A stretch of DNA of 64,000 nucleotides from Anthoceros angustus (lineage: Eukaryota; Plantae; Anthocerotophyta). Where the stretch lies: contig MU008203.1 of the NCBI GenBank assembly GCA_010909165.1, forward strand, positions 62,001-126,000. Direction: 5' to 3'. Position numbers and translations under genes: made by a program. The notes under the pieces are model-generated. The model was not told the DNA's origin. It was given only the letters and a program-made list of their open reading frames with translations, and searched no databases. Below are positions 4,990-47,297 of the stretch, one piece after another. Within the stretch, counting starts at the first letter, position 1. Each line of letters opens with the position of its first letter.

Positions 4990-7900
4990 AATGGTAATGG
5001 TAACACCGTCCTAGCCTAGAAATCCTAGAATGCAACCATTGCATGACGCAGAAAATGCTTCAATTCATGAAAACAATGAGGACAACATAGGAGAAATAAT
5101 GAGACAATGCTTCAAAACAGCTAATGAAATGGCGCAAATGTGTCAAACCGTCCCATCAATCATTTCCAAATAAGAGAAAGCTACACCATTAATCTATCTT
5201 TAATGCAATCGGCCTCATTTGACCGCAAAAGCGAAGAGGAGAATTTGGGAAAATGAAAAGTGCTTGGATATAGACGTCAAATACGAAAGAAACAATTTCT
5301 TGCACTAAGAAGTTTACTTAAGCCAAGTCCTTCATGTGACAACAAGTCGGATCAACAACAACATTACGTGAAACAAATATAAAATTTGATAGATAAATCA
5401 ATGTGATTGCACAAGACGATGTCTCACAAAATGTTGCACGGCTTATGATAAAAGGACGAGTAAAAAATCTACATGAAAATTAGGGCCCATATCAAATTTA
5501 GTAATTCCTTCTAGTGCTATGCTATTTGAGAACAATCTTATTTTCATAGTAACCTTTAAATATGATTAGTTAGATGTTATTAATCAATCCTTGGCCTTTG
5601 AAAATCGGACCTTCTATAATGTCTTTGATTGACCCTACCATATGTAATTGAAGATTTAAACCAAAATACAAATCAAAATTTATCCTTGGCCTTTGAAAAG
5701 TAGTCTTCTTTGATTTTGAGTCCTTGGTCTTTGAATCTCTGACTACGGACGACTATAAATGTGCCACCAGCCACACTAATTAGTTATCAAACAAGCTCAA
5801 CCTTTTGACCTTGGTGCATTTCACGAGTAGCTAGTGACTTTTCAAGCGTGAAGTTACAACATTTTGTTTTGGTGACAATGGTGTCTCGTGAAAAGGTTTT
5901 GAAGAATTTGATGAGGAAATCAAGCCCGATTTCCAAAGAGGATTCATCGCAATTGTTTCAAGTATCCGCAGTACGATTTGGATAAAACTTGTGTTTCTAT
6001 AGACGGATAACATTTCCGCCCCTTGCTCATATGTCCCGTAGCTTGTTCACCATGCTTCTTAAAACTTCGAGATATCCTTTATCAATCATAAGATGTCGAT
6101 AAGGAGGTTATGAAAACACTTGACATGGAGCACCGTGAGAAAATGCTTGTGGGGCTTCTATCGCCTCAACTATTATGGTGCATTTTAGAGTGGAAACCAT
6201 AACATGCATCGGTTGCAACCTTAACATGCATCTTGCAACCTAAGAATTCTTCACACGCTTTCAAGAAGATCACGCCGAGGTTACCTTCTTGTAAGATCAT
6301 TTGATAAGCGTAAAGAGGAGCACAAGTTACACAATCATATTCTTGAATTGGTGGAGAAAGGAATTCTTCAATTTTTGAAATGGATGATCACACTTGCAAA
6401 AGGAATGTAAATGCAAGATCATATTCATTAATTTATTTTAGCAGTTGATATATTCATTTTATTCTCTTTCCTACTTCATGTTTTGAAATGTTTGCAAACC
6501 ATCATTATGTTACCGAGATCATTTAACTCCACTGGCGCTGCTGGCCCACCGTAACCGCAATTTACAAGACTGCACGGATCTCCATCGTAACACGGCCCCT
6601 AGAAGATCTAAATCGCCTTTGCTTCAATCGACAAATGTTGCCGATCCGGGAAGGCCGCCATTCAACGCGCCTCCTTAAGATATGGGCTATTGAGCTCCAA
6701 GAAGTCTCGAGGCGCGAGTGGATGCCTCGAGCTGGAATTTTTGGGGCTCGTCTTGAAATACTTGGGAAAGATGGTGCGGATGAGAAACACCAAAAAAGCG
6801 GGAGCAACCTTGATTTTGGTACAAGCGTGAGAGTCTACCATGCCAATTTTTCACAACGCTTGGATCTATTGGGTGTCGTTTCTAGTTGCGTCTTCTAGAA
6901 GCTGAACCGCTCCATAATGAAATGCTGGTAAGTAGCTTCTAGACAAGGTTTTAGTATAGTTAATTAGCAATATTCTAGGAAAGTGATAAAATAGAAATAG
7001 TGATAATATAGAAGAAAATAGAAAGAGTGATAATATAGAAGTTGCCATGGGTGCCCTAGTCTATATATGTCCTATATACTCACACATATATTATGTATCT
7101 TGTGTTGGGTTTTCTATGTTATCTTAGGTTATAATTATTCTAAAGTAGGTATTTGTTTTCATATCTTTGTGTTTGGCCTCTAAAGTTGTTTGTGCACCTT
7201 GTGAACATAAAGCAGGTGGTACAAGAATAACAAGGCGTTAAAGAATTTTAGAGTATTACAAATCGCCACACACCATCCAAGAAAAACACATAGCTTGATT
7301 AGAGAAAGCTCTAAGGAAAAGAAATGGCTGCTCAACGACTTCATCTAGCATAAATACACGTGGTGACAAGAGGAGGTTTAACGGTCCGAAAATACCAATG
7401 ATAATAGGAAAACGCGTTACGAAAAAGATTCAACGACCAAGTTCAAAAGGAAATCGAGATTCACATGGTCAAGCTCCTCAACTACTTCAAAGAAACTCGA
7501 AACCCAACTGCACTGCTCATCCGCTTATACTTTGAGTTCTATCCATATGTCATTCCACAAACCTCCTCTACATCACAAGACGCTGTCCGCCACACAACAA
7601 TTTTGGACATAATATCAACCATACTTCAAAATTTTACGATGGGAACGATATCAAAATTCCAATCTTGTTCAAGGATGCCCTCGGGCATATTTTGAAAATT
7701 ATGGGCAAATGACTAATACGAGGGTCTCATCACCTACTTCTCGTGTTGGATCCAACCATGTTCAAGGATATCCACGTGCACATGTTCAAGGTCATGCGAA
7801 AATGATTAATACTACTAGGGCTGCATTTTATGATGCGAACAATATTCAAACTCCAATCATGTTCAAGGATGCCCTCCATATTATGAAGATGATGTTAAAA

Positions 7901-20989: not shown

Positions 20990-23900
20990 TCACAGACGTT
21001 TTGAGACTTTCAACAAGAAGGCCTCATCTTCTTGGAAGTTCTGAATGTTCTTGAGGCGCAACCAGTAGTCTACAGCATCCTGGTGGAACCGGCCACTGTG
21101 GTACAAGATGAGGAGAAATTCTTGTAATTCCTGTGCCACATGAGGACATTCCCCAGCTACACCATAAGCCAATGCCTTCACAAGTTGGCTTGCGAATAGG
21201 AGCTGATCTGGCATGCCTAGGTTCTCCACCTTCTTGTGCCCCAGGTACAAAAGTTGAACTGGTCTTGCTGAACCCTCCCAGTGAACCATCTGGTCTTGGG
21301 AAACCATATAGCGCTTCCCTATCCCACCCTGCAGTAAATGCTTGAGATGATAGGGAGAGTTCATCTCGTACTCGGTTACTTCAACCAAAGACTGCATCAT
21401 CTGATGTCTCCTGGAAATATCGAGTTTATGCTCTGGCTGAGACAAGAACGCCAGAACTGCTGAAAGGAGACTCTTAGTCACCAGGCCCTGCTCTATGGTA
21501 ACCCTGCTTGGCACTGGACCAGGTGTTGGCCGGGAAGAGATCTCTGAGACAACGCTGTCGCGGAGGCTCCGTACACCCATCCCGGAGTAGAGGAGGTACA
21601 GGTTGTCTCGGTTCAGAGTTGCGGAAGATCTGGGAATCCACACTACCTTGGGGCGTTCATTTTCGCCCCGGGAGAAAGCATGGACAAGTTCCAGGCTGTC
21701 GGGTAAGAAGGTTTCACTTGCAGGTGCAAGTTCCAAGTCAGCCCCTGCAATCTCTCCAGCGTATACGAAGGGAACTCGAGCATTTTGCAGGAAAGTTTCG
21801 CGGACCCCAGACTCGCATTTATACCAATCGTCGGTGATTGCTCGCCACACTATCTCAACAAAATGGCGTGTTACCTTCCCACAGGTTTCAGAATTCCCAA
21901 GCCAGAGGTCGCAGTGATGCTTCACCGTCGGCACTTTGGGAACATGTAGAACCGTTTGAAAGAAGGTAAGGAGCTCTGTATCTGTGTACACCTTATCAAG
22001 AACCGGCATATGCTCACCAAAGAAGGCACTGGGGTCAGAGATGGTGCAGCTCTCCACCGTCATCCAACTTCCCGGAGGCACCCATACTGTTTTCAAGGCA
22101 TCATCCTTTGACCACGGTTTCCATCCCCACTTTTGCAGACATGTGTAAAACCTAATAGCAACATCTAGATTGAGTTCACCTCCAGATGACTGGGAAAGTT
22201 CCACAAGATGTTTTGCCACCACCCTGGCTTTGTCTGCATTTTCCAGTGCTACCCCTATGGCTTGAAGTGGTTTTCGGAAGCCTAAGAGCTCATTCCCGTA
22301 TCCAGCACAGCTCACCATTGGAACATCAGAGGCCAGAAGTAACTCGTCTTGCTCGCTGTAAAAAACGCAAGAAGTTGGTAGTGTACGTCCATGATTATCT
22401 GTCTTCATCCAAGGCCAGGATTGGATACTTGAAAGAAACGCCTTGGGCAATTCTCCGTGTGATTGAGTATTTATCCATTCAAACAAGAGCAAGGCACATC
22501 TCCTCTCCACCAACGTTTTGGATACATCTGGCAGTGGTAAATTACCTATCGGTAATATCGGAAGATCTTTAGCGTGGAGCATGCTTTCCAGGAACTGCTT
22601 CATGGAAGAGGAAGAAACATTTGTCTTGTCAGGATTCAAGTAGTCATCCGACAACACCATCATGTGAGAGCTCCACGAATCATCCACGATAAGATCACTC
22701 CACTTGCTACCTTGATGAGGCTGAGCAACGACACTTCGGCTACTCACAAGTCTGACAAGGCCATGCCTGTCAACAGCGGGAAGCTCAGCCTCTGAACATG
22801 CAGTCACATCTAGGGCTGTGAGCTGGCCAGCTTCCAGACAGTGACATAGGAAACCGGTCAAGAGAAGCACCAAATGTGGGCTGCGATTACCTTTCGCTGA
22901 CGCTATCAGCTGCTTAGCAAACTGAGAAACAGTAAGCTCTGTCAGGTGTGCTGTGTTGTAGAACCAGCGTTCTATATTCGCGTATCTGCGGTCGCGTAGA
23001 GCATGAACCACATCTGCTGGCAAGAAGTATAGCTTTGTCCACAAAGCGAAACAACCGGTCCAGTTGCTCAACCATCTTTCAACCTCTGGAGCAGATCTGA
23101 ATATTTTCCTATGCGTCATTTTCTGTTCCTCCAAGGATATCAATTGAAATGTGTCTCCTGCATTCTGCAGACAACGGAGCAGGGGAATCCTGTACAACGC
23201 TCCAGCTGATGATGTACAGGAACCCATGTAATCAGCAACGTAACCCAAAACGTCGAGGTAGAGGCTGGTGCTGAGCTTCTCCAGCCATCCAGGAGAGGAA
23301 ATGCACGAAGCATACTCTTGTTGCGACATGTGCCCCACATTCATGTCGTCCATAGCACTTGCATACCTGTCCTGCACATTCTTATTCACAATGAACAAGG
23401 CACCCGAATGTGACAATAAACTCGGAGGCGGAACACTCTCTTCATTAGAGCGCCCCAAAATGCTACGGAAATTCGCATTGATCATACGTGCAGCAGAAGG
23501 TCTGCAGAACAGTTTCCTGCCACTGGAACCAACATCCTGCGAGCATAAGACGAATTCCCCATTGCGAAGTTCGTTTATGATGGACAATCTGACAGTTTCC
23601 AGTACAGGAACAGGGGACGCTTGAACAGGAACGAAACTATATGCATCCTCCACTTCCAAGGGAGCAATTGCGGCTCGATCAAGCGTCCTTTTCTGCAACA
23701 GGACATCAAAGGCCCTGAGAAAGGCTTTTGGAATGCAGCCTAAAATTCCCTGATTCCATGGGCTGTCAAAGAGCATGGTCTCCCGGGAAGCCACAAGCAG
23801 AAAATCAGAGTTGATTAGGAAGGGCAATTTCGACCTCAACTCTGTGGGTAGGAAAGCAAACACATCTCCAGATTGAGCGAATCCTTCCACCACAATGCGT

Positions 23901-25062
23901 TGCACGCAAGGGAAGGCCAGAGTCACCACCCATGAATCAACCTCTCTTCTGCTTTCGACGACATGCTGATTGTCGACAGGAAATGATTCCTGGTAGAGAA
24001 AATACTTACCAGACTGGACGACTTTACCGCCTTTCTGCACAGACAATGTCGCGGTGACTGTCAGCATCGGCAGACCTTGGAATACCCAAGTCCGCCCGTC
24101 CTCCCGGACGATGCTGAATTCACCTTGACCTCGAGTTGCATCGAACTCATTCCTGATGCTTATTTTCCTGAGGTGCTTGATGAAGAGGATCGTCTCCGGG
24201 GATATCTGCTGTAGCTGTGTCTGGACGGCCTGGACTTTGGTGTCCTTCAAAGGCAGCACCAAAACTGTGGTGGGTAGGCTAACACCACCGTGGTACACAT
24301 TGTCGAGAACCGCGTTCGTCGGATGTCGGGTCCATTCTGGCACCACATAGCCCACACCGGCTTCTGGATGTGGACGCTCGTCGAAGCGGATGCGGTATCC
24401 ATTGCTGATTATGTGAGGGCTTTGAGTCACAAGAAAGACACTCTTGAATCCTATACCTGCAGGGAGCACAGCCGGGTTGGGACTGAATCAGCATACAGGG
24501 ATGTAGGCGCCGTAAGGATCAGGATACAGCGAGAGCGCTCAAGAAGTAGTCTTATACTGTAATGTCACAAGCTGTTAAAGTACAGCGCTCTCACCCTTTT
24601 CTCCAATGTAACCACTTTTCCTCTTTCCTTTCTTCGTGGACGCTCCAACGCCACAAATGGCCTTGATGTTGGATTCCACAAAACCCACTTCATTGTTGAA
24701 CAGGCACAACGTAGCAGAAGCACCAAGCCCAGTGACATCGGTCTTGGTTAGAACCAGCTCCAATGTCGGCCGTGATCCATCAGGATAAGCATTGTCTTCA
24801 GCATTCTGCACACCTCATCGGAAGTCCCCCGTCAGCTACTCTGAGAGGAACTCGACATGGCATTGTGGTGCCAAGTGGCCAATCATACCTGGATGAGCTC
24901 CGAGATGAAGTGGATATCCTTCTGATACAAAGCCACAGAGAGCTGTTTGATGGCCTCGTTATAGTCTTCTGCCAGGGGATTTCGTTGCAAAGCTCCGATG
25001 CTGAATTTAACTCGTCGCAGCTCCTTCACGAACTCCTCACGGGCGGTGGCCGTGGTAGCCAT
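20990..25062 (-). CDS. Sacsin/NO VEIN-like GHKL (Bergerat-fold) ATPase protein, ~1283 aa, 3 exons (25062-24889, 24805-24595, 24456-20990)
   Basis: LYQKDIHFISELIQ|NAEDN (motif I), NNEVGF, STKKG...YIGEKG|IGFKSVF (G-box), later LPFLINSDFLL and WNQGIL, typical of the sacsin/NOV N-terminal region. Frame is preserved across both introns. Confidence 0.88.
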
Positions 25063-26984: not shown

Positions 26985-29900
26985 CTACTGTAATTTGTCT
27001 CTACCTAAGGCCTGGTCATTGAAGGTCTTTTTCTTCTTCCGTTCAGGTCGTGTCCACTGCATGTTGGAGGTACATTCTCCTAAGACAACCCGACCTGCCG
27101 GCTTCTTTTTTCTTGATTCTGTCTCGAAGAATGGACGTTTTCTCCTCAATGATGTATCAGCCCCCTCCTGCATGACAAGGTGAGGTGTAGAGGACAAGCC
27201 AAGGCTTGCTCCATTAGCCTCCTTTCCCTCCAAGTTCCGAACTAGCAATCCCATGACCCCACATGCGTGCTCACACAAGAGTGGTTCTAGTTTCACAATT
27301 GCAGTGAGTTTAAGCCACAACATCTGCAGAGTGTCTTCTGAACTCCTTTGTGAGCCCACCATGGTTCGTGGCCCTGACTCCACCGCAAGTGCATCCTGTT
27401 CAGGCTCTTCACCTCCTACATGATCAGCCCCCTCCTCAAATTGTGGCCCGTTGCCAATGTCTTCAGGAAATATGTGATTTCCAATATCCAAAGGAAGAAA
27501 AGGTGTAGTCTTCCTTTGGATCAAGGCAGCCACAAGAGCATGTGACCAATTGCCGGCACAGCATCAAGACTTTAACTTGATGCTTACATATGTTCAGGAG
27601 ACGCGTACATACAGCCGGTCTGGCATTGGTGACAATGGGCATGGGCATGTGGCTTCAATGGAAATACATAAGCAACGTTATGCGAACTGCGGGAATGATG
27701 ACTTGTGAACTGGGATCTTCGTAGCTTTAGCAAGGTGTTCTATCATTCATTCTAACTTTCTATTTCTCACAAAGCCCGCCTTCTTGCATTCGATGATACG
27801 AAGTGTACTTGACTTCATCCACTAAATGCGTGTAAAAGCCATCCACTCTGCGACCCCAAAATGCGCTGAGTACAGGATGCTCTTACTTTCAAGTGCAAAT
27901 GGTATGCCTCAATTGAACTATTGCAGTCTTGACCTGCATGAGGAACTGCTCTCACTGCTTCTAACCACATATGAATAATTCTTCCCCACTGCTGCTTGAA
28001 GTAGGTGATGAATATAGGGTACACTCTCAACCGAGTATACAAGGATTCGAGCTTCTCTCTTGCTGCTGCCTCGAAATGAGTGGACACCCTTCCATGTACA
28101 TTATCTCTCCCGACTGTTGCATGATGTCTAATATTGCTGCTGCATTTTTTACCTTCTGTAAGAGATTTCTCAACCACGCTCTCCGCACATGCCAAAGGCA
28201 CAAGAAGACTAACATGTATACGGACCAAAAGTCTGCTTGATTGCATTTATTTCTGCTTGGCAGTCGTCCACCAAAAATGCATTTGGTTGCCACATGGGAG
28301 CAACCTCACGTGCCTTATCTTGCAGCACTTGTAGCCATCTTGCTATACTTGCCATCGGCATCTGCATATCACCCAAGCAACGGGCAAGCCATTCATGTGG
28401 TTATCAAACACCAAGAGACTAATCGGTGAAGCGCCATTTATTGAGACCAATGTTGCATCCATAGCCACAATAGAGTTATGACCCCACTTTACCAACATTT
28501 CTAGCATAAACGGTGTCTGTACACCAAGAATGAAAGTGTCTGCAGCATAAAGAAGAGGCTGTACTGTCTGTACAGGGTAGAAAACTAAGTTAGTGTGAAG
28601 GTCTATCCATATACACACAGTGTCTGCATCTTGCACATGAAGTTCATAGGTTCGAGACTTCACTTTTGTCTCCATATTCTGAACATCCTTGGGACTCAGG
28701 TAATCATCCCTTGTAAACTTGTAGGTTGGATCTGCTCGTCGTTTGGCATGAACTTCCTCTTCGTGATCAACCATGATTTGCATCTTCGTCAACTTGCACA
28801 ACAATTTATGAATGACCCAGCATCGTTTGGCATCAGATAAAAAGCGTGAGCTGGCGGGATGAGGTTGATTAGGTATTAGATCAACGTGATACTCACCCGT
28901 TGCATCGATGTGGCAGGCAATTCTCAGCTCGTGACCTCACCATCCGAGCAATATGGTGGCATAAACCGAATTGGCACCTCTCTTGATGCTTACATATGTG
29001 CCCTTACGCAGCCCAAGGGCACGTACATGCAGCCCAGCAGGTGCTGGCATTGGTGACAATGTAAGGCTGGGCATATGGCTTATTCAATGGAAATACATAA
29101 GCAACGTTGTCTGAACCTGCAGGAATGATGACTTGTGAATCTGGGATCTTCGTAGCTTTAGCAACTGAGTGTTCTATCATTCATTCTAACTTTCTATTTC
29201 TCACAAAGCCTGCCTTCTTGCATTCCTGATGATACCAGAAGTGTACTTCGACTTCGTCCACTAGTACGTATAAAAGCCAGTCCACTCTGCGACCCCGAAG
29301 TAACTGCTTGGTACAGGATGCTCTTACTTTCAAGTGCAAATGGTATGCCTCAATTGAACTATTGCAGTCTTGACCTGCATGAGGAACTGCTCTCACTGCT
29401 TCTAACCACATATGAATAATTCTTCCCCACTGCTGCTTGAAGTAGGTGATGAATATAGGGTACACACTCTCAAACTGAGTATACAAGGATTCGAGCTTCT
29501 CTCTTGCTGCTGCCTCGGAAATGAGTGGACACCCTTCCATGTACATTATCTCTCCCGACTGTTGCATGATGTCTAATATTGCTGCTGCATTTTTTACCTT
29601 CTGTAAGAGATTTCTCAACCACACTCTCCGCACATGCCAAAGGCACAAGAAGACTAACATGTCTGGATCAAAAGTCTGCTTGATTGCATTTATTTCTGCT
29701 TGGCAGTCGTCCACCAAAAATGCATTTGGTTGCCACATGGGAGCAACCTCACGTGCCTTATCTTGCAGCAACTGTAGCCATCTTGCTATACTTGCTGCAT
29801 TAGCATCTCTGCATATCACCCAAGCAACGGGCAAGCCATTCATGTGGTTATCAAACACCAAGAGACTAATCAGCTGAAACTGCCATTTATTGAGACCAAT

Positions 29901-30855
29901 CGTCGCATCCATAGCCACAATAGAGTTATGACCCCACTTTACCAACATTTCTAGCATAAACGGTGTCTGCACACCAAGAATGAAAGTGTCTGCAGCATAA
30001 AGAAGAGGCTGTACAAGGTAGAAAACTAAGTTAGTGTGAAGGTCTATCCATATACACACAGTGTCTGCATCTTGCACATGAAGTTCATAGGTTCGAGACT
30101 TCACTTTTGTCTCCATATTCTGAACATCCTTGGGACTCAGGTAATCATCCCTTGTAAACTTGTAGGTTGGATCCGTCGTTTGGCATGAACTTCCTCTTCG
30201 TGATCAACCATGATTTGCATCTTCGTCAACTTGCACAACAATTTATGAATGACCCAGCGTCGTTTGGCATCGGATAAAAAGCAACAGCTGGCGGGATGAG
30301 GTTGAGATTAGGTATTAGATCAACGTGATTACTCACCCGTTGCATCAGGAAACCGTTCTCAGCTCGTGACCTCAGCCATCTGAGCAATATGGTGGCATAA
30401 AACTGGAATTGGCACCCTCTCTTGATGCTGGCTTTCGCCCTTCTTGAGCCAGGACCTGTCTTTGGCCTCAGTGATGGATCCACAAAGTTGGAGAGTTCAG
30501 CACATTGACCTCGACGGTCAGTTGGTCCATATTGACAATGATACACCACACATTCAGATACTTGTGTGGGCCTTCTAACGTTCTTGGGAGCTTCCTTCGA
30601 AATCCAATGGTACAGCTTGCTGAACTATGTTGAGAATCTAGCGCTTTGTGCTTCCCCTTCCACGAAATCCACCACTCGACAAGTTGGAATGTAGGCCCTA
30701 AGCACTTGTTCCTTAACTTTCTTCTGCCCACATTCATGAGTGCCCAGCGCCCACGACAAGGCTTCTTTGGCAAATGCACCATCTGGTGGCGTTTGCACCA
30801 CCAAGTCTCGGAGCTTCTCATCCGGACAGGCAAGCGATACAGTCATGGTTTCCAA
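26985..30855 (-). pseudogene. MULE transposase with SWIM zinc finger, disrupted, with ~1.4-kb internal tandem duplication
   Basis: Catalytic motifs AMDAT, FLVDDC, CLWH, SSIEAYH in the 29181-30116 ORF; N-terminal KRGCQFQF; C-terminal NICKH (SWIM) near 27590. 27588-28984 repeats 28985-30420. Confidence 0.85.
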
Positions 30856-31692
30856 TGTGTTTCGGCGGAAAATCCCATAATAAAGCTCAAGTTCCTTTTA
30901 AGCACACTTAATATTCAGTCACGGAGATTGAGCGATCACGGTAGGGCAGCCGCGGGCGTGAGGCGGTGGCGGGAGATAATCGGGGCGTGTGCTTGCCTAG
31001 CGCGCGTTGATGTCGGCCTCGGGCCGGTTTGATGTGTGTAAGAGAGAGAGAGCCGCACGGACGGGGCTCAACGGTCGAGGTCTGTCGTGCTTTGCCATCA
31101 ATCGTTTGTGAAGAATAGGCGACGGCGTCTCCTCGAATGTCTTTCCCATAACTACCTACTGCACCAATGATATCAGGGATGATAAAGGGCCTACCTAGCC
31201 GGTGCCGAAGAAGCCGCTAGTTCTGCACATGTAGCCGTCCTATAAACAGCGTTAGCCAACGCTTTCTGCAGAGCTATGGAGTCTTTTAATTATGACATTG
31301 CAGATGCATCCTCGACTAGAAGTAGTAATATGTAGGTCTTTTAATCTTCCTTTGTTATGACGTTGTAGGCGCTGTAAATGACTTTAGACGCGAGCTTAAT
31401 TGCCCCTTCCTTACTGTGACCCTTGGGGGTCTCCCTTTGGTGTGGGGGTTCACCCATCGGCTCTTGAATAAAATTCTTCTTCTCCTTCTTCTTTCCTCAA
31501 TAAAACCTTCAGAGTAAAGTAGGGGTCTGGCCTTGGGGGGGTCAGATGCTCCCGGGGCTTCCCTCAGATGAAGTGTGTGCACTGCCCTTGCCTTCGAAGG
31601 GCGGTGTGATGATGCACAGTATGTCCCTAGGCCTGTTGCCACGGCCTGCATAGTTCTCTGTGCGTCTCATCTTTCAAGAACGGTGCCTGAAG

Positions 31693-34600
31693 ATGGCAAC
31701 CGTGTGTCAACCGGATCCCTTGTGGACCCAACAGATTGGTGGCTGTACAGGAATTCGACGAGGAGGTTCCCCTCACCTCACCTTAGGGAAGCAACTGCCT
31801 GCAAAGAGCCAAGCCAGGTGCAGCAATGTAAGGAACCCAGCACTTCCGAGCAGATTTATGGCTGGGGAGGCATTTTCCAACGATGGTGGTTGGCAGCAGG
31901 AGCAGGAGCAGGAACTCTTGTGGCGACAATTGTTTCTGGACCCTGCCATGTGGTGGGATAACAGGCGAGGTAAGAAAAGCTCTCGAACGCCTGACTTCCG
32001 GCGGAAGGGGTCCGGCGAGGTCCTCTGGTTAAACAGCATGTCCAAACCAGCTTGGGTGGATGAGCAGCTCGTTTCTTTGGATATGCAGATGGGTCATGTC
32101 AAGTCGAGCTCTCCGGATAAGCCTGAGCCTGGCAGTGCAGGGTGGGAAATGGGCGCCGTAACGGCTGCCACCGTAAGCACGTTATGTGAGCAGGGAAAGC
32201 TTACTGAGGCCGTTGGAGCTCTGGAATCTCTGGCGCAGACGGGCTGTCCTATTTCTCTGTCTCTGCTTTATGCTGTGCTGAAGCTGTGTGCAGCTAAGAA
32301 GGATATGGTTGTGGGTCGACGAGTTCATGATCTCGCTGTCAAACTTGGGTACGAGGCAGATACGTTCTTGGGGAACCATATTTTACGCGTGTATGCAGGT
32401 GGGGGTAGGCTAGAGGAGGCCATGGATGTGCTCACCAGGGTGGGCAAACCAGATGTCTTCATGTGGGTTTCGATAATCTCCGCCCATGCTAAACATGGGA
32501 AGCCTACGGAGGCCATACAACTGTACCGTGAGATGAGTAGCTCTGGTGTGAAAGCAGATGCTCACGTCTTTGTAGCAGCCCTTCAAGCTTGTGCACTTGC
32601 TGCGGACGTGGAATCTGGCAGAAAGGTTCACGGTGATGTGTTGCGCAGTGGGATTCCTCCTAGTTTGTTTGTAGCCAACTCCCTGGTGGACATGTACGCA
32701 AAATGTGGAGACCTGGAAGCTGCACGCAGGGTTTTTGACAGCTTGCCCACAAAGGATGTGGTGACATGGAATGCCCTCATAGCTGGGTATGCAAATCATG
32801 GGCTCGCCAAAGAGGCTCTAGGTCTGTATGGACAAATTGAGCAGGAGGGCCTGATTGTGGGTAACCATGTTACATTTGCTTGCCTCCTGAAGGCCTGTGC
32901 AAGCGCCGGTGCCTTACAGGAAGGCAGGCAGCTGCATTCTCAGATTTGGAAAAGAGGACAGCTAGGTAACATACTTGTGGGCAACGGCCTGGTGGACATG
33001 TATGCAAAGTGTGGCAAATTGCAAGATGCACGTCATGTTTTTGACAGCTTGGCTACAAAGGATGTGGTGACATGGAATATTCTGATTGCTGGGTATGCTC
33101 AGCAAGGGTTCAGCCAAGAGGCGCTTGATCTGTATGGACAAATGGAGCAGGAACGCCTGGTTGTGGCTGACCATGTTACATTTGCTTCCCTTCTGAATGC
33201 CTGTGCAACAGCTAGTGACTTACAGAAGGGTAGGCAGCTGCACTCTCAGATTGTGGAAAGAGGACTACTAGATAACATACTGGTGGGCAACTGCCTGGTG
33301 GACATGTATGCAAAATGTGGTGAACTGGAAGATGCACGCCAGGTTTTGACAGCTTGGCACAAAGGATGTGGTGACATGGACGGCCCTGATAGCTGGGTAT
33401 GCAAATCATGGGCTCGGCCACAAGGCGCTTGTTCTGTATGGACAAATGGAGCAGGAACGCCTGGTTGTGGCTGACCATGTTACATTTGCTTCCCTTCTGA
33501 ATGCCTGTGCAACAGCTAGTGACTTACAGAAGGGTAGGCAGCTGCACTCTCAGATTGTGGAAAGAGGACTACTAGATAACATACTGGTGGGCAACTGCCT
33601 CGTAGACATGTATGCAAAATGTGGCGAACTGGAAGATGCACGCAGGGTTTTTGATAGCTTGGGCACAAAGGATGTGGTGACATGGACGGCTCTGATAGCT
33701 GGGTATGCAAATCATGGGCTCGGCCACAAGGCGCTTGTTCTGCATGAACAAATGGAGCAGGAAGGCCTGGTTTTGGGTAACCATGTTACTCTTGCTTGCC
33801 TTCTGAAGGCCTGTGGAAGTGCTGGCGCCTTACAGAAGGGTAGGCAGCTGCACTCACAGATTGTGGAAAGAGGACAACTAGATAACGTTGTTGTGGGCAC
33901 TTGCCTGGTGGACATGTATGCAAAGTGTGGTGAACTGGGCGAGGCATGCTGTGTTTTTGACAGCTTGGCCACAAAAAATGTGGTAACATGGAATGCCCTG
34001 ATAGCTGGGTGTGGTTCTTGTAATGAAGGGCAGAAGGCACTAGCACGCTTTGAGGAGATGTTAGCTGCCGGCATCCAGCCTGACGATGCTACTTTCTCTT
34101 GCCTTTTAGTGGCATGCAGTCATGAGGGACTGGTTAACGAGGGTCGCAAGCACTTTGATTCCATGGTTGAACAGCATCACATCAAACCCACTATCGAACA
34201 TTACAATTGCATGGTTGATCTTCTCGGGCGTGCTGGCCATTTAGACGAGGCAGAGAAGATGCTACTATCATGTGAGACTCAAAGCAATGTTGTCGGTTTG
34301 ACATCTTTGCTGAACGCCTGCAAAAGTCACGGGAACATCGAGATGGCAACGCGGTGTTTCAAGAGTCTTGTTAGATTGGAGCCTCAAGGTGCATCCGCAT
34401 ATGTCCTCATGGCCAATGCCTACGCCAATGCAGGAATGTGGACCGATGTAGATAGGATTGAAGCACAGAGAATGGCAGCAGGAGCTAACAAGAAACCTGC
34501 AGTGGCGGGCATTGAAGTGAAGCAGCAGGTACACACATTTGTAGTGGGAGAAAACAGAGATGATCTTGCGGTCAAGGTGGAGAGCGTGAATGCACGTCTG

Positions 34601-34894
34601 AAGCAGGAAGGGGGCCACGTACCACACACGCAGTTGGTGCTAAAGCCACTATCTGAGAAGGAAAAGGAAGATGAGCTTTGCGGGCATGCTGAGAAGCTAG
34701 CTTTGGCGTTTGGTCTTCTGAACACTCCAAGTGGCACACCTCTGGTGGTAACGAAGAACCTCCGCATGTGCAGTGACTGCCACAGTTCCACGGAGATCAT
34801 GTCCAGGCTTGAAAAGAGAGACATTGTTGTAAGGGATGGATACCGTGTGCATCGATTCGCAGCTGGCTGTTGCACTTGTAATGGTCGACCGTGA
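31693..34894 (+). CDS. PLS-class PPR protein with N-terminal PDF motif and C-terminal E-DYW:KP (GRP-type) deaminase domain; apparent -2 frameshift at ~33344-33357
   Basis: About 6 P-L-S triplets, P2-L2-S2, E1/E2, KKPAVAGIEV in place of the PG box, HAEKLALAFG...CSDC zinc motif, C-terminus ...CTCNGRP*. Two ORFs (31660-33474, 33368-34894) join by restoring 2 nt. The start codon is uncertain. Confidence 0.92.
33130..33745 (+). repeat. Near-identical tandem duplication of one PLS triplet (306-nt unit; first copy 304 nt)
   Basis: ctgtatggacaaatggagc at 33130 and 33434; ctgcatgaacaaatggagc at 33740. Confidence 0.9.
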
Positions 34895-35546
34895 GAACGA
34901 ACAACTAGTCAGTGGTAAGCTGGTGAAATGTTCGAGGGGAAGAATCAACAGCTGGGCAGGGGACTGTGCTGAGGATTCGTTTACACTGGTGTCGTGAGCA
35001 AGTCATCTACGGGTATCCACAGAAGCACAGCGTCTCACGTATGGCCGTCTGGGTCCCGTGTCGTGGCGGTTTGCTTCCATTTTCCCCCAATTTCTCTACG
35101 TGCGAAGCAACTAGGCCAGGTTGCTTATTTTCAACAGGCTCCTCTACGTCATCTTCAGTACGCAGTATGCACAGCACTGTTACACAAACCGTACCTATTT
35201 TAGAAAGGAACATGTCTGGCTCTATCCTGACATATAGAGATGCCCGGGCTTCGTCCGTTCCGGGTGTGTGGAACTTTTTTTTTCTCGAGTTTTACTCGGC
35301 CGAATTTAGAGCCGGCTCCTAAAATTTGTCTCCTTAGTGATGAGCGTGCAGAGGTGGGATCCACCACTCTCACCCCGGTTACCGGTCTATCTATTTTCCC
35401 CTTCCCATCCATATCCCAGTCTCCATGGGTTCCAATCTCACCCTGATGCGCGTCCGAGACCGTTTTTATCGAGGAAAGAAATAGAGGAAAATGCTTCCAC
35501 GGCCACATGAGCTCCCGCGTGGCCACTGGGAAATCTTAGTCCCTTA

Positions 35547-35778: not shown

Positions 35779-35853
35779 GCTTAGATCGGTACTTAGATGG
35801 GGTGCCTAAAGGGAGGGCTTAGATCGGTACTTAGATGGGTGCCTAAAGGGAGT
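35779..35853. repeat. Two-copy 38-bp tandem repeat
   Basis: gcttagatcggtacttagatggg(g)tgcctaaagggag at 35779 and 35817. A second 33-bp duplication (ggctcagagaaaatctatggg) lies at ~35978-36031. Confidence 0.85.
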
Positions 35854-39273: not shown

Positions 39274-41908
39274 TCATCGACGACCCTTCTTCTTGCTGCT
39301 TCTCTGCGAGGGAGGTCGGGAAGCTTCCGCTGCTGCTGCCGAAGTGGACGGGGCTGATGGCTTGCCGGGGCCTGCACCTGCCTGCTTGCCGGCACCGACG
39401 TTCAGCTCCGAGGCCTTGCTGTCCTTGCTCACAGCCCCCTGGGCGCCTCTAATCTGGGCGTTCCTCTTGTCTTTCTTCTTGGGCTTGTAGGTCGACCTCT
39501 CTCTCCTAGGCAGCCATCTCTCCGGGTCAGGGGGTGGGCCTGGATTCTCAGGATCGAATCCCTTGGGGTACAGAGGCTTTCTCTTGCGCTTCTTCTTAGG
39601 CCGGGTTTTGTCGGCCTTGTCCTCAACTTTGAGTGTTGAACCGTCCTCGCCAGCCCGAGCGCGCTTGCTTGCCATGGGAGTGGCACTCGCCGTCTGCTCC
39701 AAGGCTGCTACATCCAGCGACGACAAGCCAGGCAGTGGTGGAAGCTGAGCTGCATAGCCTTCGGCCTCTGCTGGATTCAGGTGAGCTGTGCTGCAGATCA
39801 GCCCATGTAAAGCTTTTGACCGAACCACTGGGGATGGGCTCTTGGCCAGTTGCTGGAAGAGAGTGGCAGCACCCTTCAAGTTGTTGTGCTTTAGCTTGAA
39901 ATCTGCTGCTGCTTCCAGAAGGACTACCTCGTATGCGCTGGATTCGTCCAGCATGCTATTCTGCCAGTGCTGCACAGCTGCGTCCAGAACAGCTTCTGCA
40001 CCCTTCACATCCCCAGCTCGCTCTTTGAGAGAGACCAGAGTGGCAACTACACCTGGCTTGTGTTTTAACTCCCCTATCTTTTCCAGAGATTCAGCAGCAC
40101 GTTGATACTGGCCTGCAGCAGCCGCTGCTTGAGCTCGCACAAGAAGTGCTTCGGTTGAACCACTAGGATGTGCGTCAGCATATTGCCCTATAATTTCTTC
40201 TGCCTTTCCAGGTTTCCCCTCCTTCAGATACAGTGAACCTGCGAGCAGAGTTGGCATTACACTGCTTGGAAAGGTCTCCTGAAGCAGCGGCACAAGTTCA
40301 CGTGCCTGCAAGACACAAGCTACACTCATCAGCTTCATCCGCTTCTTTTACTCCTTACATCAGTAGAAGCTATGACTCAGAGAATAACGTCACCTGATCA
40401 AATTTGCTTGAATACAGGAGCAGAAGAAACCGGTTGAAGCTCATGGCTTCCTTTTGTCGAGCCGAAAGCTTATGGTCCAAATTCTCCACAAACTGTCCCC
40501 CTTTCTTTGCAATTATCTTGTCAAACTTCTTTAAAGAATCGAAGAGCTCCTTTGCTCCCCTCAGTGCTATTAGGTTATTAGAGGCTACAGCCAAAGACGG
40601 TGCATCATCTGGTTTCTGCTTCAACAAAGCACTATAGCTTGCCATTGCTTCTGCTGCCCGCCCTTGCATCTGTCCGAACAGAAAGTTCAAGGGTTGATTT
40701 TCATCGATGATTCACGACTGGAAAAGGCAGACAAAACATGGATAGTATTCAGCCCCAGCTCGTACCTGTTGCACATAGGCAAGCTGCACAGCAATGGGAG
40801 CTAGCTCTTCAACTATCTGTTGCTCCGTGTAATCATCCTCAATCAGCATTTCCTGCCCAATCCTGCAGACAGCACTTGTTCACAATCAGTAAACTGGTAA
40901 CTTTCTCCTCAAACTATTAAGACAGAGGGTAGCAAATGCAACCGCCCCTACCTTCGCGCCAGAAGAAGCAGCTCTTCTGCTTTCACAAACTCCCTCAATT
41001 CTATCAACGCACATGCCGCATTGTATGCCAAGTCAAAGCTAGTCTTGGGAGTCACTTTCAAACTGTCCATGAGTGCAGGGACCTCGCTTGACCTTCCACC
41101 AGACACATAAGCCGCCACAAGATTGGTCTTCACTTCATCTGCGTCGACTTTGTGCTTGTGGAACAGCTTCTCATAGCTGCTGATGCAAGCACCAAAATCA
41201 CCCATTTTGTGCTGAATCTGAGCTTCCAACTGAATGGCAGCTGCATTCTGGTCTCCGGTCTTCAAAGTATTCAGTGCCTGCTGCATCCTGTTCTCTTTGT
41301 ATAGACAATATGCCTGACAAAAGCAGCATCCCAAGTATATTGACAACAAAGCCAGAGCTCTTTGGGTCCCGCAAAATCCACAAGACCTAACATTATCAGA
41401 CAAACGAGCAAATCTACCAACCTTTTCGAAAAAAAACAAACTTTCTCGTGTTTGGTTGAGTCCAATGGTTAACAACGCGTCTTTGAACTTCTCCAGCTGC
41501 ACAAGAGCTACCACTTTGCATCTGATCGCCTCAGGATCCTTCGGATCCAATGCCAGGACTGAGATTAGGTCAAGGAAATCCACAAGAGACAAATCACGTA
41601 AGCCCTTAAGCCCGACCACAATCCAAGGTCTCCCACTGCATCAAAGAGATTCAGTCTGCAACATCGTGATGCAACAAAAAGAGGACGACCTGGCCCAACG
41701 AATTACTCAATGCATGGAGGATACTCTGCTCTGACACCTGCAGGGCCTGCTTCAGGGCCTGCTTGTCGTCTCTGGCTTTTACATGCCTATCCAGGACAGC
41801 TATGAGATCATCCACAGATGGTCCCTGCGGCGCTGCAGGTGTTGTATTGAGATTCGGAGCTGCCCCTGTTGCCGGGGCCAGAGCTTTGTGCTTTGCCTTG
41901 GGCGCCAT
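39274..41908 (-). CDS. SRP72: Signal recognition particle subunit SRP72, multi-exon
   Basis: TPR region (DPEAIRCKVVALVQLEKF, AYCLYKENR, LEAQIQHKMGDF, LAYNAACALIE), LAVASNNLIAL, and the RNA-binding motif KKKRKRKPLYPKGFDPENPGPPPDPERWLPRRERS. Confidence 0.95.
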
Positions 41909-44894: not shown

Positions 44895-47297
44895 ATGTGG
44901 GAGCAGCGGTGTGTAAGCGCGAGGGCCGGCGGGTTGTCTGCGTGGGGCGCTGCTTTCTCATGGAGGTCGGGATTGCACCCAGCATCAGCTGGCAGAGGGC
45001 AAAAGCCACGGAGCCCCTGGCACCCCGTGCTTGTGGTTGGTGCAGGTGCAGGAGAAGGAGAAGGAGTGTTGGATTACCACAGCCGGACAGAGGTAGATCC
45101 CGTCTTATTGGGTCCCCGGATGCCCTTGTCCAACAATGCCACCACCTACTATACTGGGCACCAGGCGGATGCCCCCAGCAAGGAGGTCTGGAGAAGGAAG
45201 AGGATAGGGTGGCTGTGCAAGGAGCTGCCCGTGCGGAGAGGGCGTGAGATTGCTGGCCTGCTCAAGGACCAGAGAAAATGGATCAAGTGGGTGGATGCGC
45301 AGAAGGTGATGGAGCAGCTTTTGTTCCTCCGGGAGTTCGTTTGCTGCTACCATGTATGTATCGGCTTGGCCTTGGTCTTGTTTCTCCTGCCTGGTCATTG
45401 ATGCTTGGGTTCCAGGGAGTTGGAGTTGACAGTGATCTGCTTTGGGTCACAGGTGTACAAGTGGGCACATGCTCAGCCTTGGTATGAGTTTGAGTACGGC
45501 TTGACAACACGGATAGCCAATTCGCTGGCTCTGGACAGGAAGGCAAGCAAAGCGCACGACCTTCTGGATGTTATCATGCGCAGTGGGAGTCCACCTGATG
45601 CAGCTACCTTCTCATCCGTGATTGTGGCTTACATTAAGGAAGGGCAGGAGGCATCTGTGAGGGAGGCCTGGAGTGTGTACAACCAGATGAATCTTGTGGG
45701 TGGCTATGATCCGCCGTTGACAGTTCAGAACAAGCTCTTCTCTGCCCTGGTGTGCATGGCTGATGATGTGGCTGAGTTTGGTGACCATGCTGATGTTGTG
45801 TTCCACCACATTGTGAACGCGGGTCACCCCTTCAGCACAGAGATGTGTGAATCCCTGATGCGGGTCCACGGCAGGATGGGAAACAGGAGGCAGTTGTGGT
45901 CTGTGGTTGGGAAAATGGAGAGGACTCAACTCAGACTGGGTTTAGCAGGGTTTACGTCTATCTTGCAGCTCTGCGCCAAGGAAGGAGATGTAGAAGGTGC
46001 TGATAGAGCGTGGCTTGACATGGTTAAAGCTGGCATTCAGCCCGACGGGCCCGTTTATCTGCAGGCTATGAAGACATACGGAAGGGCTGGATTCCCCTGG
46101 AAAGTTCACCAGACATTTCAAGACATGGTGAGCAAGGATATGGAACCTAGCTACAAGGCATACTTGGTTGTTCTTCAGAGTATGGCAGACGCAGGTGAAG
46201 AAACTTGTGCCCTTAAGTTTCTAGACTGTCTACGCTCCAGTGGTATGGCACCTTTGTTACCTGCATACAACGCCATCATGGGTATGTACCTGAGGATGGG
46301 GGCTTTCGACAAGGTCAAGGTGACATTTGATCAGATGCAGGGACAGCAGTGCCGTCCCAACCGTGAGTCCTACAACACGCTTATCGAAGCCTACACCAGA
46401 GCTGGTCTCCTGGAACAAGCAGAGGAGGTGTTCGAGTTCATGCTGAACAACTATCACCCCAATCAACGGACGTACAACCTCATGCTGCAAGGCTATGGCA
46501 CAGAAGGTAACTTGAGCAAGGTGAAGGAGGTGGTGTCTGTCATGAACAGGCATTGTCAGGTCGAACCTCAGAACAGAGAGGTGGTCACAGCTGCATTCTC
46601 GTCTCCAACCACCTCAGCCGAAGCATTGCCTGCAGCAGCACATGACCTGACTCTTGACACTTGCCAGAGAGAAACACTGGTGGGTTTGTTGCTGGGTGGG
46701 GCTCACATTGGTACTGACGATGACGGCCTAACCTTCCGTGTCAGATTAGATCTTGATCCTACCAGCTTTGTCGCCGTAAGCCTCTTGCAAAACCTGAAAA
46801 CTATCTTCGCTGAATGGACTCAGTCACCACCTCCAGATGGTACCTATCCCAGCCTGCTTCAGTTTCAAACCATTAACCACCCTTCCCTTCGATTCTTCGC
46901 ATCCCAGTACAGACCCGGTGGGAGAGCAGCTATTCCAAGGCTCATTCATCGCTGGCTAACTCCTCGAGCATTAGCCTACTGGTACATGCTCAGTGATCTC
47001 ATGAATGGAGACATCCTGTTCCACAACCCCGGGTATAGCTCAGAGGACATCCTGCTCCTCTCCAAGGCCTTCAAGGCCAAGGGGCTCGACTGCACAGGAA
47101 ACAAGGATGGTTGGATGCATCTCAGTGAACAAGGGGCCCAGCTCGCATGGGAGCTCATGGAAACACACCTACTGGTCGAAGTAAGGCAAACATGCAGGCC
47201 AAGGCGCTCCGTTGCACCACAACCGTTTCAGGATCATCCTGTCTCCCAAAGTCCATGCTTTGCACATCAGATATCATACAGAAGGTGCGTGTCATGA
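44895..47297 (+). CDS. OTP51: P-class PPR protein with C-terminal LAGLIDADG-like domain (plastid splicing factor), 2 exons
   Basis: WRRKRIGWLCKELP; PPR tract; then QRETLVGLLLGG and IPRLIHRWLTPRALAYWYM, matching OTP51 architecture. Intron at ~45353-45432. Confidence 0.88.

Follow-up and report, generated by a model that had tools for sequence, protein, structure and literature searches.

The 64,000-nucleotide stretch of Anthoceros angustus contig MU008203.1 analysed here (the window) contains a pentatricopeptide repeat (PPR) gene whose product carries, ahead of its repeats, a PDF motif of the kind known from the OSB family of plant single-stranded DNA-binding proteins. All coordinates are positions within the 64-kb window and refer to the plus strand unless stated otherwise. 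The locus consists of two overlapping open reading frames (ORFs) in different frames of the plus strand, the first (31660-33474, 604 amino acids) with at least six PPR matches and the second (33368-34894, 508 amino acids) with PPR repeats ahead of an E motif and a DYW deaminase-like domain, all identified with Pfam. The families PPR, PPR_2 and PPR_1 are all matched, with E values of 9e-50 and 7.5e-53 for PPR (PF01535). Positions 31693-34894 are best explained as a single gene without introns that belongs to the hornwort-type family of PLS-PPR editing factors and in which presequence, PDF motif, linker, PPR tract, E motif and a DYW domain of the KP type with a terminal GRP follow one another (Table 1). 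The hallmarks of a PLS-class PPR-E-DYW protein, namely a P-L-S array followed by an E motif and, at the C-terminus, a DYW domain with HxE...CxxC, are all present in the gene; a single uninterrupted reading frame is not.

Table 1. Features of the PDF-PPR gene (window positions; X1 is a sequencing run labelled as, or guessed to be, RNA).
Feature	Position	Strand	Basis or remark
Probable 5' untranslated region	31521-31692	+	Exact 435-nt X1 contig over 31521-31955; five short upstream ATG frames inside
Presequence from first in-frame ATG, putative organelle targeting peptide	31693-31917	+	Not conserved with relatives
PDF motif, OSB-type small domain	31918-32070	+	Homology and predicted fold; HMM match spans 31900-32091
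Linker of about 30 amino acids, rich in Ser, Pro and Gly, from PDF motif to first PPR-like motif	32071-32160	+	Translation
PLS-class PPR tract, about 21 motifs	32161-34327	+	Pfam PPR, PPR_2, PPR_1
Tandem array, 306-nt unit equal to one P-L-S triplet	32676-34010	+	TRF: period 306, 4.4 copies, 87% matches
Frame break	33344-33358	+	Alignment of five repeat units
E motif	34328-34516	+	PF20431, E 1.2e-13, residues 321-383 of the second ORF
DYW deaminase-like domain, DYW:KP type, GRP subgroup, then stop codon	34613-34894	+	PF14432, E 1.1e-31
3' untranslated region, extending beyond 35100	34895-35100	+	Exact 443-nt X1 contig from 34845 past 35100

Sequence comparison and structure prediction agree on the identity of the N-terminal motif. 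The initial annotation had placed an OSB-type PDF motif at 31910-32085, in frame with the repeats that follow, and the peptide in question (LWRQLF...WVDEQL) is indeed encoded inside that interval, in frame with the first ORF and ahead of the PPR tract. A phmmer search of its 66-residue stretch against 1.84 billion representative proteins returned 621 matches at E ≤ 1e-3, of which 154 reach E ≤ 1e-10, a similarity far beyond chance; as many as 13 tandem PDF copies occur in the best of them. Among the matches, a Populus protein named 'protein OSB1, mitochondrial-like' (P0038), in which a weak SSB domain is followed by two PDF motifs, matches the window motif at E 8.2e-24. When a hidden Markov model (HMM) built from 108 PDF motifs was run against the six-frame translation of the window, it found this motif (E 2.7e-27) and nothing else, and all 13 of the 5 invariant and 8 nearly invariant columns of the 108-motif alignment are kept in the window copy.

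The AlphaFold2 model of the motif, computed from the 108-motif alignment, consists of a helix, two short strands and a helix and has a mean pLDDT of 93.2. Compared by Foldseek with 550,129 Swiss-Prot models in AFDB, it significantly matches only the PDF motifs of Arabidopsis OSB1-4 (E 1e-5 to 9e-4, TM 0.73-0.87), a comparison in which both sides are predicted models. In the AFDB cluster library, several of the significant structural matches are named OSB and the rest, aligned at 35-48% identity, are unnamed. No solved structure resembling the motif emerged from a Foldseek search of the PDB at E ≤ 0.001, a profile search of PDB sequences returned nothing relevant, and the best Z score in a VIA-align comparison with solved structures was 4.2. 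A reading of the model as a dsRBD-like alpha-beta-beta-beta-alpha fold was dropped, there being no dsRBD among the structure matches. The 100-residue N-terminal stretch matches no Pfam family at E ≤ 1, and we therefore conclude that Pfam has no model for the PDF motif. By sequence and predicted fold, the window motif is a genuine OSB-type PDF motif, as first proposed.

The gene as a whole is a carrier of this motif and not an OSB gene. In OSB proteins an SSB-like OB domain is followed by one to several C-terminal PDF motifs, whereas the window gene has a single PDF motif N-terminal to its PPR tract and no SSB or OB domain in either ORF, where Pfam finds only PPR, E and DYW. What the two share is the same motif of about 50 residues with the same conserved positions, 41-48% identity and the same predicted fold. 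In reviews of the family, the PDF motif is reported to be responsible for the binding of single-stranded DNA (ssDNA) by AtOSB1, and OSB proteins are reported to prefer ssDNA over double-stranded DNA or RNA (PMC6963530, PMC6451138, PMC4166229). The motif also turns up in other contexts, including a 1526-residue model with a kinesin domain (P0047), a 1063-residue protein without Pfam domains (P0039) and a Kingdonia protein with 13 PDF stretches (P0001), some of which may be merged gene models.

At its C-terminal end the gene belongs to the class of PPR proteins described from hornworts. DYW:KP domains are distinguished from DYW:PG domains by the replacement of the PG box (KP), by HAE instead of HSE and by a changed last triplet, and hornwort KP proteins fall into two subgroups ending in DRH or GRP (PMC9478123). 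The window domain reads KKPAVAGIEV at the position of the PG box, then HAEKLA and KNLRMCSDCH, and ends in CNGRP before the stop codon. By these sequence features it is a DYW:KP domain of the GRP subgroup, in line with the KP assignment made at the outset, and its GRP ending would suggest a genome of the hornwort type. PLS repeats, E motif, KP, HAE, a conserved lysine before CxDCH and the terminal GRP are common to the window gene and the hornwort PPR-DYW:KP proteins of that subgroup (PMC9478123, PMC11845758). The descriptions of natural and designer proteins consulted there deal only with the PLS array and the C-terminal domains and leave an N-terminal PDF motif unmentioned; the window copy further differs from them in its broken frame. 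U-to-C conversion has been shown only for designer KP proteins (PMC9478123, PMC11845758); by its class the window domain is a candidate U-to-C type.

Proteins that combine a PDF motif with PPR repeats are common in mosses, liverworts, lycophytes and ferns, as judged from their sequences. Of the best 150 of the 621 library matches, 12 have both, among them gene models from Ceratopteris, Adiantum and Selaginella and transcriptome ORFs from Pteridium, the latter placing both elements in a single fern mRNA. A further 80 came from searches seeded with one of these proteins (P0007) and with a Sphagnum protein (P0173); they belong to Sphagnum species, the liverwort Calypogeia fissa, the lycophyte Diphasiastrum and Adiantum. 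In all full-length models the PDF motif lies near the N-terminus, within residues 1 to about 170, and some proteins (P0007, P0168, P0189 and P0059) have two or three such motifs each. Public examples from Selaginella (XP_024517303), Ceratopteris (KAH7415344), Adiantum (KAI5076972) and Sphagnum fallax (KAH8944416) have the same order of presequence, PDF motif and PLS-PPR tract as the window gene; their database annotation goes no further than PPR or hypothetical protein, and their C-termini are DYW domains ending in DYW or of the E type, in contrast to the KP/GRP end of the window gene. The expectation that PLS-DYW proteins normally carry only a targeting peptide ahead of their repeats thus fails for seedless plants, given the numerous PDF-PPR proteins in Sphagnum, Calypogeia and Diphasiastrum. 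No PDF-PPR protein from a seed plant was seen in this non-exhaustive sampling, which lists the best 150 of the 621 matches.

The closest intact relative is a 753-residue protein encoded by a single ORF in a Logan assembly (P0120), collinear with the window gene from the PDF motif to a DYW:KP domain with the same KP, HAE and GRP features, at 51-61% identity. Its BLASTP alignment begins exactly at the PDF motif, the two presequences being unrelated, and the linker behind the motif is gapped and poorly conserved. A Logan contig from the same sample (SRR33208241) contains a further example (L002, 6001-8506, plus strand), in which an ORF with the PDF motif (P0110) is followed 44 nt later by a 657-residue PPR-E-DYW ORF in another frame. 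Removal of an 88-nt GT..AG interval (6486-6573) joins the two in frame, and the PDF motif appears to be a separate exon here, bounded by a putative 88-nt intron. The DYW domain of this gene is a KP-like variant (KTPAKA, HVE, ending RRN); on the neighbouring PPR gene of the contig the PDF HMM detected no motif.

In three cases, namely the window gene, P0120 and the gene on L002, the PDF motif is paired with a KP-like DYW domain, which could suggest that it serves the DYW:KP aminase specifically, for instance as a cofactor of reverse U-to-C editing, as the initial annotation had considered. A census of C-termini argues strongly against such a tie. The census covers 82 PDF-PPR proteins of Sphagnum, Calypogeia, Diphasiastrum, Selaginella and ferns. 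A DYW domain with HSE...CxxC is present in 37 of them; almost all of these end in DYW or something close to it, and 22 show a clear PG box by pattern match. A further 44 lack a DYW domain (E-type or bare PLS), and only P0120 is of the KP type (1/82). The proteins with HSE domains come from Sphagnum, Calypogeia and Diphasiastrum, and mosses and liverworts are known for C-to-U editing only. We therefore regard a dedicated partnership with the KP aminase as extremely improbable. The distribution suggests instead an accessory module of general use in the PPR proteins of seedless plants, present whatever the C-terminal catalytic type.

Phylogenetic analysis of the motif itself suggests that this association is old. 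In a tree of 155 PDF motifs over 66 columns, of which 63 are PPR-linked, the label 'attached to PPR' requires 7 changes as against 49 with shuffled labels, and 4 when three short fragments are set aside, one of them the PDF exon of L002. With all 63 PPR-linked motifs kept to one side of a branch, the best tree found exceeds the free quick search by 40.9 likelihood units (AU test, p 0.85), and the motifs of the public PDF-PPR proteins named above group together. One ancient PDF-PPR fusion is, on so few columns, not rejected, and the PDF motifs found on PLS-PPR proteins probably form an old sub-family with members in hornwort-type sequences, mosses, liverworts, lycophytes and ferns. A fuller scenario would have a single fusion before the split of bryophytes and vascular plants put a single-strand clamp on a PLS-PPR protein as an integral helper in the editing machinery of ancestral land plants; the clamp would grip the RNA, perhaps while it is still being transcribed at the nucleoid, on the 5' side of the PPR footprint, with seed plants later losing the PDF motif and relying on MORF/RIP and ORRM proteins; we offer this as a speculation that is, as a whole, quite unlikely to hold. 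An ORF of 311 amino acids with a MULE transposase and a ZSWIM-type RNaseH-like domain lies 1.5 kb upstream of the PPR gene (29181-30116, minus strand). Local capture by this neighbouring element was considered as the origin of the fusion and rejected, since the same domain arrangement occurs intact elsewhere, and also in other lineages of plants.

Read data are consistent with transcription of the window copy. Exact contigs from X1 cover 31521-31955, 32106-32303, 32571-32772, 32890-33006, 33049-33261, 33980-34127 and 34243-34465, and a last one runs from 34845 past 35100. At 31300-31426 the depth is zero in X1 and 17.5 in X2, a DNA-labelled run of the same sample. The X1 contigs fit a transcript that starts near 31521 and in which the presequence and the start of the PDF motif are unspliced. 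Both in-frame ATG candidates, 31693 and 31858, lie upstream of the motif. The ATG at 31693 has a good context (CTGAAGATGG) and opens a 72-residue stretch that is basic at its start, with 4 R+K as against 1 D+E in the first 40 residues. An exact contig reaches the start of the motif, but none bridges 31956-32105, and the RNA nature of X1 is itself a guess. The X2 contigs of the same region (31300-35100) have many single-base gaps relative to the window (for example at 31403, 31425, 31444, 31535 and 31769), as would be expected of an indel-prone data set, whereas the X1 contigs are exact.

The domain order bears out the description of the gene as a PPR-DYW:KP editing factor, but the reading frame is broken about 1.3 kb downstream of the PDF motif in the assembled sequence, which the initial annotation had missed. 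Within the tandem array, repeat unit 3 lacks one T of the run at 33344-33347 (four, as against five in all other units) and has a second 1-nt deletion at 33357/33358 relative to all other units. Frame 1 consequently stops at 33472-33474, and the reading continues to the end of the gene in the frame of the second ORF. Unit 3 is mosaic in composition: it resembles unit 4 over its first half and shares about 160 identical nucleotides with unit 2 in its second, which indicates a recent duplication or conversion. Some read contigs show a T insertion behind 33343 but cannot be assigned to the window locus, because contigs of paralogues pile up on the conserved PPR parts to depths of up to 4e5. An exact-product look-up found no identical record for the product of either ORF, so no independent assembly of the gene is available for comparison.

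The window copy is accordingly either an expressed pseudogene or an intact gene with two local assembly errors. In the first case the locus would have no working protein: a transcribed pseudogene would have arisen by tandem duplication of a PLS triplet and subsequent decay, leaving the PDF motif as a relic. The two 1-nt deletions with their premature stop, the mosaic composition of unit 3 from the first half of unit 4 and the second half of unit 2, and the MULE fragment 1.5 kb upstream are all in keeping with such decay. On the other hand, the two deletions lie only 14 nt from each other, each in a homopolymer within a repeat, the kind of sequence in which polishing of an assembly works least well, all conserved PDF and DYW residues are intact, and exact contigs are present in the RNA-labelled run. 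We give the pseudogene a little less than an even chance; it is compatible with any reading of the family as a whole.

On its RNA a PPR tract is oriented with the N-terminus facing the 5' end, and a PDF motif at the N-terminus would therefore be positioned just 5' of the stretch read by the repeats, a footprint of roughly 21 nt. As a built-in helper it may add a sequence-independent grip on single-stranded nucleic acid or keep the strand unfolded. We infer nucleic-acid binding by the window motif, and any effect on editing, from the review accounts of AtOSB1. The idea of a general nucleic-acid module aiding a sequence-specific PPR tract is shared with RRM-PPR proteins (maize PPR4 / PpPPR_3) and with the trans-acting helpers of seed plants (MORF/RIP, ORRM), to which the PDF motif is unrelated in sequence; its own helper role would be an analogous one.

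A different use of the same binding activity would be to tether the editing factor to ssDNA of the organelle nucleoid, in transcription bubbles, R-loops or replication intermediates, and so couple editing to transcription. This would accord with the reported role of the motif as the ssDNA-binding part of AtOSB1, with the preference of OSB proteins for ssDNA over RNA and with the conserved PDF columns, which are the same in PPR-linked and OSB copies; its place directly ahead of an RNA-reading tract suits contact with RNA equally well, and a DNA tether seems to us unlikely. Alternatively, the motif could be a module for protein-protein contact or oligomerisation without a nucleic-acid role, docking for instance to OSB or other PDF-bearing factors. 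AtOSB2 is reported to be tetrameric, and some PDF-PPR proteins carry the motif in two or three copies (P0007, P0168, P0189 and P0059), but nothing ties oligomerisation to the PDF motif itself, and the aromatic and basic residues that it conserves (W, W, R, K, F, W, W) would be typical of nucleic-acid contact. A purely protein-binding role is, in our view, decidedly unlikely.

Our preferred reading, to which we assign a probability of roughly 60%, is that the window holds a hornwort-type PDF-PLS-PPR-E-DYW:KP gene, frame-broken as assembled, in which the PDF motif is an old general accessory module, probably a single-strand helper, and not a U-to-C device. Several points weigh against it. The reading frame of the window copy is broken as assembled; the X1 contigs, from a run guessed to be RNA, include none across 31956-32105 or the frame break; the PDF tree is built on only 66 columns; and the reported preference of AtOSB1 and AtOSB2 for ssDNA over RNA (PMC4166229) is as compatible with a DNA tether as with an RNA clamp.

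Elsewhere in the window, an ORF of 630 amino acids (45405-47297) encodes PPR repeats followed by LAGLIDADG_2 (PF03161, E 1.7e-23), the known OTP51-like architecture, without a PDF motif. An ORF on the minus strand (39274-40338) combines TPR repeats with an SRP72 RNA-binding domain (PF08492, E 3.8e-14) and probably represents one exon of an SRP72 gene, and a 1159-residue ORF on the same strand (20990-24469) matches no Pfam family at E ≤ 1e-5. Just downstream of the 3' region of the PDF-PPR gene, a 38-nt unit occurs in two tandem copies (35779-35852, 97% matches).

We found no published description of a PDF motif on PPR proteins in the searchable literature: neither the PDF motif nor OSB1 is paired with DYW in any relevant way, and the single paper that mentions both the PDF motif and pentatricopeptide does so in unconnected sections. 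A review of Physcomitrium PPR proteins lists RRM, LAGLIDADG, SMR, NYN, CBS and SAP as extra domains, and the PDF motif is absent from that list. We call the combination undescribed in this sense, as not found within the searchable literature. Being missing from both Pfam and searchable papers, the PDF motif is an overlooked part of PPR editors.

The window locus itself is of smaller value, its copy being broken as assembled and the idea of a U-to-C-specific role having failed. The broader significance lies with the family. In the usual picture of a PPR editing factor, a targeting peptide is followed by repeats that read the RNA and by an enzyme at the C-terminus, and such factors are being engineered as programmable C-to-U and U-to-C editors. 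The PDF motif adds to this picture a conserved and confidently folded N-terminal module, predicted to bind nucleic acid, on dozens of natural editors from every seedless land-plant lineage sampled. PDF-PPR proteins link the OSB family to RNA metabolism and may bear on how seedless plants edit their transcripts without the helper proteins of seed plants.

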